Below, one piece after another: positions 20,194 to 56,354 of a stretch of 64,000 nt of DNA. This DNA is from Setoptus koraiensis. Lineage: Eukaryota; Animalia; Arthropoda. A model generated the notes under the pieces. That model searched no databases and had not been told where the DNA came from. It saw only the letters and a list, made by a program, of their open reading frames with translations. The position numbers and the translations under genes are program-made. Positions within the stretch are counted from its first letter, which is position 1. Each line of letters opens with the position of its first letter. The stretch is from NCBI GenBank assembly GCA_048013815.1, contig CM106586.1:6510001-6574000 (forward strand), in the 5' to 3' direction.

Positions 20194-22278
20194 AATTTGA
20201 TTCTCTGGCTTCTTGTATAGATATATGTATTTGTGTGTTTAGATATTTGGAGAGGTTGTTGTATTAATATAATATAGTATAATATTGTAATATTAATGAT
20301 AATCAATTATAATAATGATAATAATAATAGTAGTGATGATTGTTCTTGTTCCCTCCTGTGATTTTTTCTACAAACATTAACAGGCGGCGATAGATGGCGA
20401 TCGATTAAGTTTGGTTTCTACTGTTATTAATGGTTGCAATGATGGCGATAATAATAATCATGTAAGAGTAATAATATATCAATTGGTGATTGCCAACTAA
20501 TTTGCATGGTCATGGGTGTCATTGCGCTAAAGCTGGCTGCATGTAGATGTAGATACACACGAAATATTGTGATACTATGATGATGATGATAATAATAATA
20601 ATAATATTCAAAATTTCATGTTGATGCTTGTCGTTCGTTGCCAAGTTAAACCCACTGCACCATATGAGAGTGGCACACAACACAACGCGGACGTCATAGA
20701 AAGGGTGCAACGAAGTTTAGAGACACCATGTAAGTAAGAGAAGCAACAGCAACGACAAATGAACTAACCAATACTGAGACACACAAACAGACACACTCAT
20801 AGACAGACGGACGGACAAACAAACAGACAGACGGACGGGCTTGGTTACTGTAACCAAGTTACACATTTAGAGAGGACACACTAAATTTTATTTGTGGAAC
20901 TTGTATTCGCTAGTGCAGCACCAAAGACATGGTGTAAATATAATGATAAACATTTATATTCATACGTGAATGTGTGTGCGTGTGTGTGTGTTTGTTTGTG
21001 CAGAGGCAAATAAATTGAATAGTATGGTGTGTGTTGCTTCGAAAACAACCACAAACAAACATATATGCTGCTGCAACATCTCGTAGCTTGCATACATAGG
21101 GGGAAGTGAGACCAAGTTGCCTAGTAGTAAATTATACTAATACCACAGCTTGCAGTATGACGACACACGCACATTTATACATGAATTTGTGGCTTAACGA
21201 GTCTGACGATGCTTATTTGATCAACTCATGGCCTTCAATATGTATATTCATTTGGAACAATTATTCACAGCTGCAAGCCATTGCGGGCCTCTCGCCGACA
21301 AGCGCTCTGTCCGAAGCGCTCTGCTGTTCCTCTCATGTGTGTGCAAGCTATAAAGAATGTTTTACGACGAATGGCCTTACATACGAGCGAGTCTAGCGTT
21401 CCTTCGTGCTGGGCTCATGTCCAATGAGTCGTCCAGTGATTGGTGGCCAATTTACAAGATCTCAAACTACCGAGGGGCCTCCCGCGGGCCGTGCCAGACC
21501 GGGCGCGACCCCGAGACGCCCTGTCGGTCTTGCACAGGGGCACGGGGCAGCTCTCGGGACGCTACAGCAGCGTGAGCCGCTGCCCCACTCGGTACGCCGC
21601 CAAGGAGGGGCGTGCTCGTTGAGGAGCATTTTGTTTTGTTTGATGTAAGATTTAAAAAGAAATGGGGGGCAGGGGTCACGCGGACGCTTCCCAAGCCCGA
21701 ACCAAAAATGACGTACCCCATCTGAGTCGATTTGACCCAGTGGAGGTGTTCAACGCTGCCCGAAGTGCAATGGGCACGCCTCCCACCTGCGGAACGGCCT
21801 TCTTGATCGCCATCCTCGCGGTACCAGGTAAGTATGCTTAAGCATGTGCGGATATTTGCCCTTATATACTGCCATATGGTTATGAAAGACGGTTTGTGTC
21901 CCCATAAAATCTGATAATTCATCACTAAAAAATAGTGAATATTCTGTTCTATTTTGCATATTTGTCTTTCGGGTGACAACTGTTTCAATGATTTTCATAA
22001 TAAAATGATGAAACATGCTTTGAGATTAGAAAAATTCCCAATTTCGCCATACGAACATCACCGCACATTAATATGCATGGCCCACATGTTCACTTATAAT
22101 GGAAAATGTCATGGCGAGTTGGTCAAATCATTTTTGTTTGTAGGCATTTGGCAACGTCATGAGAGTGACTCGTCAGATACCCTAATGGACATTAAGTATT
22201 ATCACTATCCATCTGTTATCACTACTGATTGGCAACTCACAATTGTCATATAGTCGTTGAAATTATAGCAAAAAAAAG

Positions 22279-33872: not shown

Positions 33873-34372
33873 NNNNNNNNNNNNNNNNNNNNNNNNNNNN
33901 NNNNNNNNNNNNNNNNNNNNNNNNNNNNNNNNNNNNNNNNNNNNNNNNNNNNNNNNNNNNNNNNNNNNNNNNNNNNNNNNNNNNNNNNNNNNNNNNNNNN
34001 NNNNNNNNNNNNNNNNNNNNNNNNNNNNNNNNNNNNNNNNNNNNNNNNNNNNNNNNNNNNNNNNNNNNNNNNNNNNNNNNNNNNNNNNNNNNNNNNNNNN
34101 NNNNNNNNNNNNNNNNNNNNNNNNNNNNNNNNNNNNNNNNNNNNNNNNNNNNNNNNNNNNNNNNNNNNNNNNNNNNNNNNNNNNNNNNNNNNNNNNNNNN
34201 NNNNNNNNNNNNNNNNNNNNNNNNNNNNNNNNNNNNNNNNNNNNNNNNNNNNNNNNNNNNNNNNNNNNNNNNNNNNNNNNNNNNNNNNNNNNNNNNNNNN
34301 NNNNNNNNNNNNNNNNNNNNNNNNNNNNNNNNNNNNNNNNNNNNNNNNNNNNNNNNNNNNNNNNNNNNNNNN
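33873..34372. other. Assembly gap (500 N)
   Basis: A run of exactly 500 N; the round number suggests a scaffolding placeholder. Confidence 0.99.
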
Positions 34373-34891: not shown

Positions 34892-34930
34892 AAAAAGTAG
34901 AATTTCTCCGACGAATATCTACCAGGGCAT

Positions 34931-37510
34931 CTATTGAAGAGGGTCTTCGACCAATATCAGTCGTCGCGGCAAATACTGCCACAAGATGATAGTGTCCACT
35001 TCGGTCAGCTTGTGGCTGTTCTCAATGATGATGGTGTCGAACTTGCACCAGCTGTCCTCGTGAAACAATCTAGCCGCGTTGAATATGGTGCAGCACACTA
35101 CCTGACATCCGGCCAGCACTCGCCGTCTGGAGTCGCGCTGGTAGTCCAGCCAATCGTCTCTTTCGACCCAGTGGAGATTCATAAACTCGGCCGGGTCCAG
35201 TTCGCTTTTGTTGGGCAGCCCGGGCTTGTCGCACGGTGGCTGATGGCGCATCAGCACGTGCAAATAATACGACTTGCTGTTGTCCCGCTGAGGCCTATAA
35301 CGGGGCCTTACATGAACCACCTTGAGCTTGCCCGATTCATCCAGCCTGTCGGCTGTTTTTTCCAGCTCTTGGTCCGTGGCAGCCACAATCAGTATTTTGG
35401 ATTCGGGATGCGAGCGTGTCTCGTACAAAAATCGCGAGAATGTCACCAGCGACATAGAGCGCAAATCGGGGTCACCTTCCAACGCTAGCAGCGATATCCG
35501 TTGGCGCAGCAGCGACCCTATGGCCTCTCGTTTGCCCTGTCTCATGCCGTCGGGCCACTCGGGCTCTTTGGCGTACTTGAGCACATGAATGGTGTTGTTT
35601 GGTGCAACCAGTCTGTCGCGCAAATAAAAGTCCGATAATATGCGCGTTTTGGTGTACGAATGCGACATCTGGCATTCGCGCAGGCTCTCGCTAAGCAGCC
35701 AGTCATCAAACGACAAATCCCACGTGTGGTTGATCCGCGTGTCGGGCGGCAGCATGATGTACAGGCTTGAGTCGCGGTACGTCTCGGTATCGGGCAGATC
35801 CTCGCGCCGCATTACAATGCCCCGATCATCCTCCAGCACCCCATAGGGCTCAAATTGCACCACCATGCCGGGCCGAGCGTTTGCCAATAATTGTCGATTG
35901 CATTGGCGCGCCACCGCGTAGCCGCCCTCGGGTTTTGGGTCCACCTCGACGTTTCGATGTCGGCATCCGGGTTCCACCGTTCTGGCGCGCCAGCTCTGGA
36001 ACAACATTGTAATTTGTTGCATGTGTGCCTCTTCCTTTGGCGTCCAGTCCTTAGGTGGGTCGCGCGGGGGCCTCAGGTGGCATTGCCTGTTCCCCTCGAG
36101 CAGTGCCTCGTCGGGTGTCAGCCCGTTGATCGAGCGCAAACGAGGGCACGTGCGCGTCAGCTCAGACCAGAAATAATTTATGCTAGCCGGCGGACGTTGA
36201 TTTTCGTAAAATCTAAGCGAAAATATCTCCAAATTGCGCGATTTCTTGGCCAGTTTCAGCAGGCCTTTGTACACATCCCATTTGAACAGATTGTCGGCGT
36301 CTATGATGAGCGTCTTGAAGCTGTAGCGCCCCTCCGGATGCAATTCCGGATTGCATCCTTGCATCTCCGGATGCTCGAACAGAAGATGCTCGTGGAAGAA
36401 TTCAAAGATGATGGGGTCGCGCATGGTGAGGTGCAACAGGCGGTCGCGCGTTGCGTCAAACAATTGGTCCAGTTCGTCGGGATCGTCCAGCATGATGTAG
36501 TCCAAGGTGAGCGTGTGTAGCTCGCTTAAATTGACCACTAGAGCCAGCAGCTCGCCGTGCGCGAACGAGGTGCTGGTCACGTTCAAACTCGTCACGTGCT
36601 CACAATGATCCGTTACGATGCGATGATGATCGTGATGCACGCGCGGTATGACGCGGGCAAAATCGATATCGGTCACGTTGGGCGACTTCATGAACAGGGG
36701 CTCCAGCGAGGCCAGTTCGCGCGTTCGGGGCCTCCAACAGGCCAGCGACAGCTTCTTCAGGCCGACGTAGTGTTGTCTCACCAGCTCACATAGGTTCCTG
36801 GAGACGCAAGACAGTCGGGCCAGAGCTATGTGTTCGCCTTCTAACTGCCTCATGACGTGCAGCCAGACGTCATCCGGCAATTGGGGGATCATGGCAAATT
36901 CAATATGAGACAAAATGTTGAGACACGATTTGAGTATGGTGGACGATCTAACAAAATCCGATCTGTCAAAATAGAGTTTGCCCAGTTTGGTGTTGGTCTT
37001 GAACCAGAGCCGATCATTTTTGGCGTCTTTCAATGCGTCCAACGTTGTCTCATAAAACTCTTGCAACAATTCCATTTGTTTCGATGTTGATATGTAATCA
37101 AGAATGGAGTTGATTGATTTCTCGGAATAATTTCGAGTGACCGCACTCTTGATATAGGTTAACAATTGCTGGTATCTCAGCATCATCTCACTGTAGTTGC
37201 CCAAGCCAAAATTAATTTTTATCATTTGCTTAAGTGCCTTAAATCCCCAATCGCCTTTTTCGCCATTCTCCAATTCTAATACACGCTGAAAGCTTATCAG
37301 TGCCGCTTGTGGATTGTTTTCCTTCATGGCTTTTGAATTGTAATATTGATTTTCGAGGTCGACATCGGGCTCGGAATTACTATCTTCACTGTATTCGAGG
37401 TCGTAGTCCTCCTCGTCGTCGCACATGAAGTCGTTGTCGTTGTCAGACATATTTATTGTTTTATTATTCCGTATAACGTCGTCCGGCAATTGGCTGAAGG
37501 GGAAGCTCAT
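34931..37510 (-). CDS. Chimeric intronless protein: CSN2 N-terminal fragment, F-box, LRR, degenerate UPF1-like helicase N-half (859 aa)
   Basis: Single open frame. [40 protein letters not shown]...[12 protein letters not shown] is CSN2; [29 protein letters not shown] is an F-box; LRR-like repeats follow; the C-terminal part is collinear with UPF1 1B/RecA1/1C ([49 protein letters not shown]). Confidence 0.85.
36885..37475 (-). other. CSN2: 591-bp insert derived from COP9 signalosome subunit 2 (25 nt of leader, roughly the first 170 codons, short unrelated tail), flanked by an 18-bp duplication
   Basis: Flanks on the plus strand are acgtcatccggcaattgg (36867-36884) and acgtcgtccggcaattgg (37476-37493). 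The paralog has a single copy at 54880-54897. 591+18=609 nt, i.e. 203 codons, so the frame is preserved. Confidence 0.9.
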
Positions 37511-38495
37511 GGCACCAGATTCCGCCCACTCCTCGGGAAATGGATAATTACCGGCAACTGGTAATTACGGGCCACGGGCTACGGGGATTACCTGTAGACA
37601 TCGGCGGCTGCTTGGTTGTGGTGGCTAATAAGTGGCCGTTTGTTTATAGCGGCCAATTAGTTGCTAATTAGTGGCTAGTCCTATAGAAATGGAAATTGCG
37701 TTTTAAATATTTGCGACTTGTGTCTGTGTGTGTGTGGGTGGATTGTGTGTGATTTATGGCGATTGGGTCTGGATATTGGTTGCGATCTTATCTCGATAGA
37801 GCGTTGTTGTGAAATGATACAAAATGAAACGAAACGAAATGAGAAGACAAACAAACGACTCCAACAATGAATTGGTGCAACAAATGAAACAATGCCCCAT
37901 TGCTCTGGCCTGATGCGAGCAAACGTTTAGCTTGCGCTCGCGCTTTCCCATCGAGCATGCCAACCATTAATACTGGTGCGAGGTCGATGCACCTGTCGCA
38001 CCGACCGTTGGATGGTGCACAGTCACCTTTAAACAATCAGCACGACGACAGTCGACGGTCGAAGGGTATCGCCAATTGCGACCTGCAACCGTCGATAAGT
38101 ACCAACTGCATGTCTAATCCCTATATTACTCATGTGTTAGCTGCGCTCGCCAATCTCGAGCTTTGCGGCTCAGAATCGAGTGCATCCGATGGGCCGACAC
38201 CAACAACTAGTTGATTCTACTACACTCTTCTTTGAAAACACTTGAAATCGCTTTAAAACAAGCATATCTACATATGTATGAATTGGTCAGTCTAATCTAT
38301 CGTCTTGTTATCCTCTGATGGTAAACATTCTCAAAGAGACGTTGAAATGATTTGTTAGTAATAATAATTTATTATTGCATCGATATACTATTGAATATAT
38401 TGAAATAAATATTCTTTTTACAAAGTGGAAAAACCTAATCCTTTTTCTTATAAGGTTGTGATAAATTCTTTAGAAACAAGCGGTAATGTATATTT

Positions 38496-49423: not shown

Positions 49424-49649
49424 ACGTAACATTACCGAAACTGAAGTGCCTCTTAGAGGATCGGATTCAACCGTTTCCGGTCTTGAAGGCAATGATATAC
49501 AAATCGACAAGTCGCTTAAGCTAATTTGACAGTCCTTGTTCATTAATAAAAGATATCAAAAAGCACTAGAGAGTGCACTTCAATTTTTTCCATGTCATAA
49601 CGACAAAAATACTTCCAATACTATCCTTGTTCTTCCTATGCCATCTGTA

Positions 49650-50183
49650 ATTGAATTGTTTGAAATATATTGGCGAGAGGTCTGTCAATTAGCATTAGTT
49701 TTGCCTGTCGAGCTTTTCTTGTTGTGCTTTTACCCTCGAGTCGCATGACTGAAACAAAAACAAAAATGATTGTACCAAACGGGAAAATGAAAACTAATCG
49801 AAATCGTTCAATCCCTGTTTGTCGGATATGGCGATGGGACATACGTCATCTTATTATTTTTGGAACATTGTGATTGGGAGCAGAAGCTTCTCTCAATCAT
49901 AATCAAGCGATGGGTGCGTGATTTCTAAGCCGCGGTGGCCGATCGGTTTATCAGCTTGATTTTTCATCTCTATGTAGCATAAACATGAAGGCTTATATAT
50001 AATTTCTATATAAGCCTTTCGTTCGCCCCAAACGCTCAATCTAGATGTATTATTAGTCGTGTCTAATAAAGAATCGAATTTCGAACAGACTGTACCAGAA
50101 TCAAAGATGGCCTCTTCAAACTGTTCAAGGGTGACAATACGTGCGGCATGTCGTTGACGCCCTTGAGTGCGATACTCCTATAG
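49650..50183 (+). pseudogene. Internally deleted cathepsin pseudogene: duplicated upstream region joined to the last 27 codons
   Basis: About 49650-50070 aligns with about 51040-51445 (upstream of the cathepsin). 50103-50183 reads KDGLFKLFKGDNTCGMSLTPLSAILL*, versus [26 protein letters not shown] in the intact gene. Confidence 0.85.
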
Positions 50184-51380
50184 TGATTATGACGTAATGA
50201 ATATAGTGTAATATGATAAACATAATAGAATTGAAATGGTTGAATGTTGATATTTTGTCGTATTTTGTTTTTGATTCAGTTACAGAGATCACAACTGAAT
50301 TTCTCTCGCGCGTCCACTTGTCTAGCGCATCTAGCTGGGCACTTCTCTGGCGGATTATTCTCGGCAGGTATTGCAAGATCACGAGAGTATCGATCTCGCT
50401 CATTGGGTCGCTACTTCACTTATGATCGTCTCTAATTTGATTCAGTTTCCCTCGTGAAACAATATCGCAGCGTCGAATAGAGTGCAGCAAAAAAAAATAT
50501 CACTGACACTATTTCTGTCGTGCCTATCGATTGATAAAAAACAATATGATTCATGGAGAATTCAAGGCGACGAAATAAAACTGACATGCGAAAATTGAAG
50601 CATGACTAGAGAGATGATTGATCGCAAGCTATTCATGATGCTCATGACAGTAAAACTCACATTGTACTTTGAAGTTCAATGACTCATGAATGAACAAGAC
50701 CCTGATACAAACCGCAAGATCAAGAGGGCCTGAAAACTACTATCGTCAGTCAATCATTGCGACTCAACTGTGTCCTTAAAGGTGTTAGATTAGGTAAATT
50801 TAGCAGTTGTTCTCTAAATGACACACGTGATCCATTCGATTACAATATATTGTCATATGATGGAGATTAACTGTGGCCCGTGTTTGATAAGCAATCCTAT
50901 CTAGATTTATCGGATAAACTCAAAACGTAATGCACTGAAGAAAAGGTGGCCTGAAGAGTTGTCACACAATGACAGTTTATCTTGATCTAAAATCAACTCA
51001 ATAGGCATTATCACTCAGATATAGACTGCATAGTGAAACTGAATTGTTTGAAATATAATTGCGAGAGGTCTGTTAATTATCGTTAGTTTTGCCTGTCGAG
51101 CTTTTCTTGTTGTGTTTTTTTGCCCCCGAGTCGCATGACTGAAACGAAAGCAAAAATTGCCATTGTACCAAACGGGAAAATGAAAATCAATCGAAATCGT
51201 TCAATCCTTGTTCGTGGGATATGGGTGTGAGGCATACGTCACTTCATTATCGTTGAAACATTGTGTTTATGAGTCAAGTGAGTCGTTTCTCAATCGATAT
51301 CAAGCGATGGATGCGTGATATCTAAGCCGCGGTGGCCAACTGATTTGTCAGCTTGGATATTCATCTCTGGGCAATATTTC

Positions 51381-51390
51381 TATATAAGCC
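51381..51390 (+). promoter_or_regulatory. Candidate TATA box of the cathepsin gene
   Basis: tatataagcc lies about 110 bp upstream of the ATG at 51495 and is conserved in the duplicated copy at 50007-50016. Confidence 0.45.
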
Positions 51391-51494
51391 ATTCGTTGTT
51401 AGCCCAGCGCTCAATCTAGATGTTCCATTAGTTGTGTCCAATGAAATATAGTGCCCCATTTAGCAAATCAAATTTTGAGCAGTGTAGACTTACA

Positions 51495-52693: not shown

Positions 52694-52956
52694 CGAGCAC
52701 GACGTCAGCGAGCACATGAGATGTGATGAATACGATTACATAACGAATACATGATGAATATGAGACGAGTGTTGAATGCTGATATCTTGGTTTATTTTAT
52801 TTTGATCCTGTCACAGTGTTTTAATTGGAGATTTTACTTCGTTTAATTGATCGTTTTCCTTGTGTCCACTTGATTGCGCGCTGTCCAGTCGCTATGCGCA
52901 CCCATTTGCGTTGCGCACCCATTTGCGTCGCGCACCTAGCGCCTCTGGGGCACCTG

Positions 52957-55129
52957 TCCGACGAATATCTAGCGAATATCTAGGGCGCTCCGACTAATAT
53001 CAGTCGTCGCGGCAAATACTGCCACAAGATGATAGTGTCCAATTCGGTCACCTGGTGGCTGTTCTCAATGATGATGGTGTCGAACTTGCACCAGTTGTCC
53101 TCGAGAAACAATCTAGCCGCGTTGAATATGGTGCAGCACACTACCTGACATCCGGCCAGCACTTGGCGTTTTGAGTCGCGCTCGTATTTCAGCCAATCCT
53201 CCTTTCCTTCCGTGTCGAGATTCATAAACTCGGCCGGGTCCAGTTCGCTTTTGTTGGGCAGCCCGGGCTTGTCGCACGGTGGCTGATGGCGCATCAGCAC
53301 GTGCAAATAATACGACTTGCTGTTGTCCCGCTGAGGCCTATAACGGGGCCTTACATGAACCACCTTGAGCGTGCCTGATTCATCCAGCCTGTCGGCTGTT
53401 TTTTCCAGCTCTTGGTCCGTGGCAGCCACAATCAGTATCTTGGATTCGGGATGCGAGCGCGTCTCGTACAAATATTTCGAGAATGTCGCCAGCGTCATGG
53501 AGCGCACATCGGGGTTACTCTCCAACGCTAGCAGCGATATCCGTTCGCGCAGTACCGACCCTATGGTCTCCCGTAGGACTTGTGTCATGCCGTCGGGCCA
53601 CTCGGGCTCTTTGGCGTACTTGAGCACATGAATGGTGTTGTTTGGTGCAATCAGTTTGTCGCGCAAATAAAAGTCCGATATTATGCGCTGTTCTACGTAC
53701 GAATGCAACATCCGGCATTCGCGCAAAAACAGCAGCCTCACATCATGAAACGACAAATCAAAATTGCCCGTGCGTTCGATGCGCGTGTTGGCCGGAAGCA
53801 TGATGTACAGGCTCGTGTCGCGGTACGTCTCGGTATCGGGCAAATCCTCGCGCCGCATTACAATGCCCCGATTCTCGTACATCACCCGAGAGCGCACAAA
53901 TTCCACTACCATGCCGGGCCGAGCGTTTGCCAATAATTGTCGGTTGCATTGGCGCGCCACCGCGTAGCCGCGCTCGGGTTTTGGGTCCACCTCGACGTTT
54001 CGATGTCGGCATCCGGGTTCCACTGTTCTGGCGTGCCATCTCGTGAATACCGCTGTAATTTGTTGCATGTGTGCCTCTTCTCGTCGGGTCCAGTCATCAG
54101 GTGGGTCGCGCGGGGGCCTAAAATGGCATCGCCTGTTCCTTGGGAGCTGTGCCTCGGATGGTGTCAGCCCGTTGATCGAGCGCAAACGGGGGCACGTGCG
54201 CCTCAGCTCTAACCAGAATAAATCTATGCTCTCCGGCAGGGATTGATTTTCGTAAAATCTAAGCGCAAATGTCTCCAAATTGAGCGATTGCGTGGCCAGT
54301 CTCAGCAGGCCGTCGTACACTTCCAAATTGAACAGATCGTCGGCGTCTATGATGAGCGTCTGGAAGCTGTAGCGCCCCTCCGGATGCAAGAACAGGTGAG
54401 CCTTGAAGCCGCACTCGATGATGATGGGGTCGCGCATGGTGAGGTGCAACAGGCGGTCGCGCGTTGCGTCAAACAATTGGTCCAGTTCGTCGGGATCGTC
54501 CAGCATGATATAGTCCAAGGTGAGCGTGTGAAGCTTGCTTAAATTGACCACAAGAGCCAGCAGCTCGCCGTGCGCGAACGAGGTGCTGGTCACGTTCAAA
54601 CTCGTCACGTGCTCGCAATGATCCGTTACGATGCGATGATGATCGTGATGCACGCGCGGTATGACGCGGGCAAAATCGATATCGGTCACGTTGGGCGACT
54701 TCATGAACAGGGGCTCCAGCGAGGCCAGTTCGCGCGTTCGGGGCCTCCAACAGGCCAGCGACAGCTTCTTCAGGCCGACGTAGTGTTGTCTCACCAGCCT
54801 ATATAGGCTCCTGGAGACTCGAGACAGTCGGGCCAGAGCTATGTGTTCGCGTTCTAGCTGGCTCATGATGCGCAGCCAGACGTCGTCCGGCAATTGGCTG
54901 AAGGGGCGGCTCATGGCACCAGATTGCGCCCACTCCTCGGGAAATAGATAATTACCGGCAACTGGTAATTACGGGCCACGGGCTACGGGGATTACCTGTA
55001 GACACCAGTAATTAGTGGCTGCTTGGTTGTGGTGGCTAATTAGTGGCCGTTTGTTTACAGTGGCCAATTAGTTGCTAATTAGTGGCTAGTCCTATAGAAA
55101 TGGAAATTGCGTTTTAAATATTTGCGACT

Positions 55130-55160
<31 letters not shown>

Positions 55161-55729
55161 ATTGTGTGTGATTTATGGCGATTGGGTCTGGATATTGGTT
55201 GCGATCTTATCTCGATAAAGCGTTGTTGTGAAATGATACAAAATGAAACGAAACGAAATGATAAGACAAACAAACGACTCCAACAATGAATTGGTGCAAC
55301 AAATGAAACAACGCCCCATTGCTCAGGCCTGATGCAAGCAAACGTTTAGCTTGCGCTCGCGCCGTCCCATCGAGCATGCCAACCATTAATACTGGTGCAT
55401 CGCTCACAAAGCCAAAGCTCTTTGCACCTGTCTCAAGAGGTCGAGCTGGTGCAAGAGGTCGAGCTGGTGCACCAGGTCGATGCTTGTCGTGCACCTGTCG
55501 CACCGACCGTTGGATGGTGCACAGTCACCGGTGCACCTATAAACAAGCAGCACGACGTACACGCACGCCGACAGTCGACAGTGAAAGGGTATCGCCAATT
55601 GCGACCTGCAACAGTCAATGGGTACCAACTGCATGTCTAATCCCTATATTACTCATGTGTACTAGCCATGACCTTGGCGGCACAGAATCGAGTGCAACCG
55701 TTGGTCGACACCAACAACTAGTTGATTCT
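52957..55729. repeat. Segmental duplication, copy B (copy A at 34907-38218)
   Basis: See copy A. Copy B lacks the CSN2 insert and has a local expansion of an 18-bp unit (gcaagaggtcgagctggt) at about 55433-55482. Confidence 0.92.
52980..54914 (-). CDS. Intronless F-box, LRR, degenerate UPF1-like helicase N-half protein (644 aa); paralog without the insert
   Basis: [37 protein letters not shown] is an F-box; LRR-like repeats follow; the C-terminal half is collinear with UPF1 up to motif III (RRLILVGAP*). Confidence 0.88.
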   Translation of the reverse strand: MSRPFSQLPDDVWLRIMSQLEREHIALARLSRVSRSLYRLVRQHYVGLKKLSLACWRPRTRELASLEPLFMKSPNVTDIDFARVIPRVHHDHHRIVTDHCEHVTSLNVTSTSFAHGELLALVVNLSKLHTLTLDYIMLDDPDELDQLFDATRDRLLHLTMRDPIIIECGFKAHLFLHPEGRYSFQTLIIDADDLFNLEVYDGLLRLATQSLNLETFALRFYENQSLPESIDLFWLELRRTCPRLRSINGLTPSEAQLPRNRRCHFRPPRDPPDDWTRREEAHMQQITAVFTRWHARTVEPGCRHRNVEVDPKPERGYAVARQCNRQLLANARPGMVVEFVRSRVMYENRGIVMRREDLPDTETYRDTSLYIMLPANTRIERTGNFDLSFHDVRLLFLRECRMLHSYVEQRIISDFYLRDKLIAPNNTIHVLKYAKEPEWPDGMTQVLRETIGSVLRERISLLALESNPDVRSMTLATFSKYLYETRSHPESKILIVAATDQELEKTADRLDESGTLKVVHVRPRYRPQRDNSKSYYLHVLMRHQPPCDKPGLPNKSELDPAEFMNLDTEGKEDWLKYERDSKRQVLAGCQVVCCTIFNAARLFLEDNWCKFDTIIIENSHQVTELDTIILWQYLPRRLILVGAP

Positions 55730-55776
55730 GGTCTCTGTTTGGAAGCGATTATCCTCCATCTTGCGACCACATGCAA

Positions 55777-55915
55777 TGCCAAGATGCCGATATGCCAAGG
55801 TGCCGATATGCCAAGATGCCGAGATGCCGAGATGCCTAGGTGCCTAGGTGCCTAGGTGCCTAGATGCCTAGATGCCAGGGTGCTAAGATGTCGAGACGCC
55901 ATGGTGCCAAGATGC
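55777..55915. repeat. Degenerate 8-bp tandem repeat (tgccNag[a/g]), about 17 units
   Basis: tgccaaga tgccgata tgccaagg tgccgaga tgcctagg tgcctaga ... Confidence 0.85.
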
Positions 55916-56133: not shown

Positions 56134-56354
56134 GGCGATAAGGGCGATAAGGGCAGTAAGTGGTGAGGGAGTGATGGGAGAACACGGGAGAACACAGGAG
56201 AACATGGGAGAAAATTGTGGGGAGCGATGTCGCGGACAAGGCTGCCGGCAACACCCCTCCTCGCAGACACGTGTTTTCTCCCATGTTCCCCTGTGTTCTC
56301 CCGTGTTCTCCCATCACTCCCTCACCACTTACTGCCCTTATGGCCCTTATCGCC
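56134..56354. repeat. Long inverted repeat (81-bp arms, 2 mismatches, 59-bp spacer), foldback/MITE-like
   Basis: Left arm 56134-56214 (ggcgataagggcgataagggcagtaagtggtgagggagtgatgggagaacacgggagaacacaggagaacatgggagaaaa) is the reverse complement of 56274-56354 apart from two positions. Confidence 0.9.

Follow-up and report, generated by a model that had tools for sequence, protein, structure and literature searches.

A small F-box/LRR protein family whose C-terminal half descends from a UPF1-clade helicase and has lost its catalytic parts

A 644-residue reading frame on the minus strand of the window (the whole stretch of DNA that was analysed, 64 kb) raises the question of what kind of protein begins like an F-box/LRR protein and breaks off halfway through a helicase. 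The frame, here called par1, has a second copy in the window, par2 (Table 1), and the two proteins are 81% identical over 651 aa. Working from the letters alone, an earlier note had described both paralogs as an F-box/LRR region fused to a UPF1-like N-terminal half, and this description is borne out by Pfam, phmmer, a family profile and fold matches of an AlphaFold2 (AF2) model. The C-terminal 370 residues of par1 descend from a UPF1-clade SF1B helicase, of which RecA1, a 1C-like insert and, as predicted by the model, the stalk/1B-like barrel are kept, and the gene belongs to a small protein family that is conserved in a second species and so far undescribed. We give a probability of roughly 55% to the fuller reading that par1 is intact, is kept by selection and belongs to a small FBXL-type family restricted to its lineage, in which the UPF1-derived pseudo-helicase half acts as a binding module.

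Table 1. Features of the F-box/LRR/half-helicase gene par1 and its second copy par2, with positions in the window
Feature	Position	Strand	Basis
Copy par1: complete intronless ORF, F-box/LRR/half-helicase, 644 aa	52980..54914	-	ORF list, Pfam, phmmer, AF2 model
F-box, aa 5-46	54777..54902	-	Pfam PF00646 9e-9, PF12937 1.5e-6; signature residues invariant in family
LRR solenoid, ~aa 50-265, ~7 strand/helix repeats	54120..54767	-	AF2 model, VIA-align, Foldseek
Predicted stalk/1B-like region, aa 277-450: long helix, six-strand beta-barrel, two helices	53565..54086	-	Whole-model alignment to UPF1; homology to P0006 aa 167-350
RecA1 with 1C-like insertion up to motif III, aa 451-644	52983..53564	-	phmmer and profile matches to UPF1, Pfam AAA_11, superposition
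Degenerate Walker A, aa 464-472 LESNPDVRS, replacing GPPGTGKT	53499..53525	-	UPF1 alignment
Degenerate Walker B, aa 617-618 EN, replacing DE	53061..53066	-	UPF1 alignment
TAG stop at motif III	52980..52982	-	Sequence
AATAAA, candidate poly(A) signal, ~180 nt past the stop	52796..52801	-	Sequence only
5' flank common to par1 and par2	54915..55729	-	Proximal ~480 bp ~97% identical; six TAATT(A/G) at 54949-55081
Copy par2: same architecture plus in-frame insertion of CSN2 residues 1-173 (36885-37475)	34931..37510	-	ORF list, Pfam, alignment

Using Pfam, we obtained 35.3 bits for the F-box of par1 with PF00646 (cutoff 20.5) and 28.3 bits with PF12937 (cutoff 24.3). The signature residues L8, P9, W13, L30, V33, L37, L40 and V41 are invariant in seven of seven family members. 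AAA_11 was the only helicase family matched, at aa 565-642 of par1 (profile positions 169-245 of 257, 1.4e-9) and likewise in par2; UvrD families and the 1B-barrel family PF18141 gave no match in Pfam, and NCBIfam gave no useful one. The window proteins also lack matches to AAA_12, which represents RecA2 with motifs IV-VI, and to the CH zinc domain PF09416, which is likewise without a match in the relatives P0001-6 described below and is found at 5e-67 in UPF1 (P0008).

The human UPF1 helicase core is the top PDB match (phmmer, E 1.7e-5), with par1 aa 378-642 collinear with chain residues 111-370 and an identity of about 18-20% between the helicase half of par1 and UPF1. The alignment pairs TGNFDLSF with THNFQVDF, the ISLLALESNPDVRS stretch with UPF1 and, at the end, LILVG, and so reproduces every pairing on which the claim of collinearity with UPF1 had been built. 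With the family profile, UPF1 was found in the PDB at 3e-13, SEN1 at 6e-6 and SETX at 8e-5; IGHMBP2, ZNFX1, DNA2 and Aquarius gave no match at E 1.

The same alignment agrees with the earlier view of a dead ATP site. LESNPDVRS in par1 and LEGDPDLRS in par2 lie over GPPGTGKT of UPF1 and GxxGxGKT is absent, a loss of Walker A that extends to all six F-box members of the family (P0001-4 included), and at Walker B IIIENSHQ of par1 is aligned with ILIDESTQ of UPF1, with EN in the place of DE. The par1 ORF ends two residues after LILVG, and par2 shares its stop, which there reads V-E-D-P-L-Q-stop-M-P-W and resembles VGDxxQLPP. Using the RecA2 halves of P0006 and of UPF1 (P0008) as tBLASTn queries, we detected no RecA2 in the whole 64 kb (best E 0.15, inside the BiP gene), and these two queries found none downstream of the relatives' genes in L001, L002, L004 and L005. 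The proposed stop at motif III and absence of RecA2 are therefore upheld. A hidden RecA2 exon was rejected on the strength of these empty searches and of the convergent cathepsin gene on the other strand, whose end lies 290 bp beyond the par1 stop. Besides the candidate poly(A) signal in Table 1, ATTAAA occurs downstream of the stop at 52847 and 52825.

The AF2 model of par1 has a mean pLDDT of 75.5, mostly 73-94 in the LRR region, and a pTM of 0.52 that leaves the inter-domain geometry uncertain. Its top Foldseek matches are 13 UPF1 entries (4e-15 to 3e-12), followed by IGHMBP2, ZNFX1, Sen1, DNA2 and SETX, and all top structural matches of the helicase half are SF1B; SKP2 matches the front part of the model at 5e-5. 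With VIA-align, UPF1 residues 318-663 aligned to model residues 296-644 at Z 18, and the LRR fold matched COI1 (Z 15.2, model 4-265), SKP2 (Z 14.4, model 23-264), FBXL17 (Z 13.6) and TIR1, all within Z 13.6-15.2. About 226 residues superpose on UPF1 at 3.3 A, which supports the RecA1 fold with its 1C insertion. At the place of UPF1 1B, the whole model predicts a helix, a six-strand barrel and a two-helix unit; modelled in isolation, aa 280-450 gave a low-confidence structure (pLDDT 61) with matches to UPF1 and IGHMBP2 at E 0.02-0.06, mixed with N-terminal barrels of F1-ATPase. Profile and fold searches alike do align the C-terminal half to UPF1-like helicases. AlphaFold DB clusters and the ESM Atlas match the rear half only, mostly with proteins named UPF1 or RENT1.

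Relatives with the complete architecture were found by an exhaustive HMMER search of 1.84 billion protein representatives, which returned nine matches only; a word-index protein search had returned no relatives. The closest, P0001 (670 aa, 41% identity, E 5e-136), is collinear with par1 over residues 4-642, as are P0002-P0004 (704-723 aa, 31-33% identity; E 5e-136 to 9e-57 across P0001-P0004). All four contain the F-box and AAA_11, lack AAA_12/RecA2 and have genes that end in non-coding DNA. P0001 terminates with MILVG at the same point as par1 and is followed by non-coding DNA with an AATAAA, and P0002-4 run about 40 residues further, up to the SLFxKLxxxGxxP that closes RecA1, and then stop. 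Among the other matches, P0005 (298 aa) has an F-box and LRRs without a helicase part and its gene is tightly packed between other genes, P0009 is an AAA_11 fragment of 129 aa, and P0006 is a full-length helicase of 824 aa with AAA_11 and AAA_12 (1e-35) and without an F-box (E 8e-13 to par1). P0001-P0006 and P0009 all lie on genomic contigs of one Logan-assembled run, SRR33593474, and the evidence for conservation of the family thus comes from two genomes, that of the window and that of this run. Near the relatives, the SRR33593474 genes are compact and mostly intronless, and one encodes a chitin-binding CBM_14 protein.

P0006 scores 3e-53 with UPF1, 3e-29 with SEN1 and 5e-12 with IGHMBP2, among database proteins its best relatives have the zinc domain of UPF1, and it can be assigned firmly to the UPF1 clade on these matches. 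It shares LFxTR..SKILICA, QVxCCT and LPRRIxxVG with the family and has GPPGTGVT and NES for the GPPGTGKT and DES of UPF1. Its motifs III-VI (P0006 is encoded at L003 892-3366) look intact, and its N-terminal part includes a hydrophobic segment and a charged stretch; P0006 may be an ATPase-dead, possibly membrane-anchored pseudo-helicase. Beside it, L003 3-128 holds the end of a second helicase-like ORF.

In a tree built by maximum likelihood from the helicase part, all six F-box members group together (99/98), and P0006 is the sister of this clade (100/99). Within the F-box clade, par1 and par2 group with P0001 (98/96), and P0002-4 form a second subfamily (100/98). Because the F-box members fall in one clade, the two organisms must have split after the fusion had formed and RecA2 had been lost, and because the window copies group with P0001, apart from P0002-4, the two subfamilies are also older than that split. 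Of the helicase phylogeny envisaged in the earlier note, the tree covers the F-box clade, its UPF1-clade sister and the outgroups that the searches returned; for SETX, IGHMBP2, MOV10 and ZNFX1 the comparison was made through the PDB E-value and Z rankings.

The same note had inferred an SCF adaptor with the dead UPF1 module as bait or as an RNA-binding module. The adaptor part of this is plausible, given that the F-box signature residues do not vary within the family. The F-box would dock on SKP1-CUL1, and the LRR and the pseudo-helicase half would form the substrate-recognition side. As the P-loop, the DE and the arginine-finger domain are missing, the module should not use ATP, and as RecA2 is missing, it should not form an RNA channel; the half-helicase, without ATP binding or hydrolysis and without a closed RNA channel, would then be a folded binding surface. 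The pI of the helicase half is 5.2-7.4 in five of six members, compared with 8.5-9.1 for the same region of UPF1 and P0006. The absence of RecA2 and this shift towards neutral-to-acidic charge favour a surface for protein or RNP partners over generic RNA binding, and the partner would more probably be a protein or RNP than free RNA. Candidates are the partners that would dock on RecA1, 1B and 1C of full-length UPF1-derived paralogs. Since both parents of the fusion, a P0005-type and a P0006-type protein, exist separately, there is a hint of a pathway shared by the fused protein and such paralogs. Fast, mosaic evolution and multiple copies are suggestive of changing targets.

We regard as possible, though rather unlikely, that the half-helicase is instead an ATP-independent RNA-binding module that tethers the SCF to particular RNAs or RNPs and thereby brings ubiquitination to the proteins on the RNA. 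RecA1, 1B and 1C of UPF1 all contact RNA in solved complexes, and entries 2xzo and 2xzl are among the PDB/Foldseek matches. Consistent with such a role, a motif Ia-like ILI(V/C)A and a Q-motif-like LNxxQ are kept in several members, and the helicase half of P0001 is basic (pI 8.9). It is, however, the other wall of the RNA channel that is absent with RecA2, and the charge shift just described sets the remaining members apart from the basic UPF1 and P0006.

How the two window copies have evolved bears on whether the preferred reading, a maintained binding module, is correct. Between par1 and par2 there are 185 substitutions with a dS of 0.126 and a dN/dS of 0.82, which is close to neutral along much of the gene and speaks against selective maintenance. 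The ratio is uneven, with constrained blocks at aa 51-165 (0.08) and aa 481-560 (0.19) and values near 1 in the C-terminal part of the LRR, the barrel and the F-box. Both frames are open, with internal indels that are all multiples of three; when the same number and type of changes were placed at random, a stop-free frame arose in 0.12% of 20,000 trials. Polarised by P0001, par1 kept the ancestral residue 23 times and par2 nine times (p = 0.02), and the par1 branch of the tree is three times shorter than that of par2, so the near-neutral ratio is largely due to par2. No frame-disrupting mutation was detected in par1 relative to its relatives, and its 644-codon frame is collinear with P0001.

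The copies are part of a duplicated unit of ~2.78 kb, in which 52951-55729 matches 34908-38218 (BLASTN of the window against itself) and which extends from ~815 bp upstream of the ATG to ~25 nt past the shared TAG. The likeness varies along its DNA in mosaic fashion: over the first 480 coding nt the copies are 96% identical, close to the ~97% of the proximal 5' flank, and the rest is 89% identical. The dS is 0.02-0.05 in the alike tract (54420-55398 versus 36407-37979), compared with 0.15-0.24 elsewhere, which looks like a single gene-conversion tract of ~1 kb, the explanation that fits the mosaic best. In par2, the insertion at 36885-37475 on the minus strand encodes, after a short 5' leader, residues 1-173 of CSN2 (COP9 signalosome subunit 2; 2e-88 by phmmer against the PDB). 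On both sides of the insertion stands a 17-nt direct repeat, CAATTGCCGGAyGACGT, in which the F-box gene's codons for SQLPDDV are duplicated, and the ORFs listed further downstream (26.8-34.9 kb) showed no continuation of CSN2. The faster-evolving copy is thus a CSN2(N)-F-box-LRR-half-helicase chimera. A 500-N assembly gap at 33873-34372, ~560 bp downstream of the par2 stop, makes its 3' neighbourhood incomplete.

The multi-copy family, the dN/dS near 1 in the C-terminal LRR and 1B next to conserved cores, and the gene-conversion mosaic would also suit an integrated decoy, a model that the earlier note had put forward for UPF1 partners or viral anti-NMD proteins; here the dead half would mimic UPF1 or its paralogs, capture the factors with which pathogens or selfish elements attack these, and pass the factors to degradation through the F-box. 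We find this doubtful: the faster evolution is concentrated in par2, where it may simply be relaxed, and the main partner-docking site of UPF1, the CH domain, is not part of the module. A wider version, held to be just as doubtful, would have a UPF1-derived pseudo-helicase clade that expanded and recombined with N-terminal modules (F-box/LRR here, a membrane anchor in P0006) in this arthropod lineage into a surveillance receptor for viral or transposon RNP factors, such as usually engage helicases of the UPF1 type, with the F-box leading to the proteasome.

Very improbable, in our view, is that the helicase half is a decaying passenger and only the F-box/LRR part matters, or that the whole gene is a pseudogene: the dN/dS between the window copies, the nonsense codon that ends the ORF inside an apparent motif III and the existence of a stand-alone F-box/LRR relative (P0005) would fit, but a second genome and two old subfamilies share the truncated design, at 31-41% identity, the frames have stayed open against the chance expectation, and RecA1 is the best conserved region across species (its parts are 51% and 63% identical to P0001; the F-box reaches 42% and the LRR 45%). 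A transposable element was rejected, as the edges of the 2.78-kb unit have no terminal inverted or long direct repeats and the unit has no other coding capacity. A horizontal or viral origin, considered on account of a GC content of 52-54% against a background of 41%, is countered by other host ORFs in the window that are equally GC-rich, by relatives that are not GC-shifted in their own genome, and by scans of viral contigs and metagenomes that contained no relative.

The window also contains genes for BiP, an intron-containing cathepsin, poly-Q proteins and a Skeletor-type DOMON protein whose nearest ESM Atlas clusters are mostly Arthropoda, as well as a complete U1 snRNA gene (21669-21835, minus strand, Rfam 90.4 bits). 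These genes mark the window as eukaryotic, and the host, for which the DOMON clusters give no more than a lead, is probably an arthropod whose genome is compact and intron-poor. Just upstream of the par1 ATG, a stretch of 128 bp (54949-55081) contains six homeodomain-type TAATT(A/G) motifs, the densest group in the window (background 1.9 per kb), and four of the six are kept upstream of par2. About 30 nt beyond the 5' edge of the duplicated unit there is an 8-nt tandem array, ATGCCRAG, of ~16 units (55760-55895), followed after 400 bp by an imperfect palindrome of 220 bp (86%; 56134-56354), and the GC-rich stretch at 55.7-57.8 kb has no recognisable gene. A local duplication of 330-400 bp (51034-51446 versus 49646-50070, 81-84% identical) was noted just upstream of the cathepsin gene. 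Four RNA runs under the same species label gave 0 reads over 5.5 kb, and the neighbouring cathepsin gene is likewise empty. In the RNA-run index, the share of words found was 0.05-0.06 for the F-box gene and, at 0.07-0.10, no better for the highly expressed BiP control; none of the indexed RNA runs really contains the organism, so these zero counts do not bear on expression.

Many substrate-binding domains are already known from F-box proteins, and many accessory domains from UPF1-like helicases. What appears in none of the libraries and papers searched is an F-box/LRR protein that ends in a stable, conserved RecA1-only SF1 half. The description of the architecture as unrecognised holds in the libraries searched: no named protein has both halves, no AlphaFold DB or ESM Atlas entry spans them, and the papers searched offered no description of it. 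If the preferred reading of a maintained pseudo-helicase module is true, the family would be a natural case in which a former motor domain serves purely for binding and is coupled to ubiquitination. The N-terminal CH domain of UPF1 is RING-like and reportedly has E3-type activity; in that case one ubiquitin-linked module may have been swapped for another in this lineage. The reach of the finding is limited to the two related genomes in which the family has so far been seen; being small, young and variable, the family should have partners that are experimentally tractable.

Like the FBXL proteins SKP2 and FBXL17 and the plant proteins COI1 and TIR1, par1 begins with an F-box, and an LRR solenoid comes directly after it; these proteins, however, have no helicase-derived domain after the LRR, and their sequence likeness to par1 consists of the F-box and weak LRR matches only. 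UPF1 (RENT1/Nam7) is the SF1B helicase of nonsense-mediated decay, and its CH zinc-knuckle domain binds UPF2. Its order of stalk, barrel and RecA1 with 1C up to motif III is also that predicted for par1, and it is the best match for aa 296-644, but its CH zinc domain, Walker A and B, RecA2 and SQ tail are missing in par1, which belongs to a divergent side clade together with P0006. P0006 itself is the closest full-length helicase, but it has RecA2, no F-box, the N-terminal hydrophobic and charged region and a P-loop shape with V for lysine. FBH1 (FBXO18) resembles par1 in that a single chain carries both an F-box and a domain of SF1 helicase type; whereas FBH1 carries a complete, active UvrD-type SF1A motor, the par1 domain is SF1B, UPF1-type, half-length and catalytically dead.
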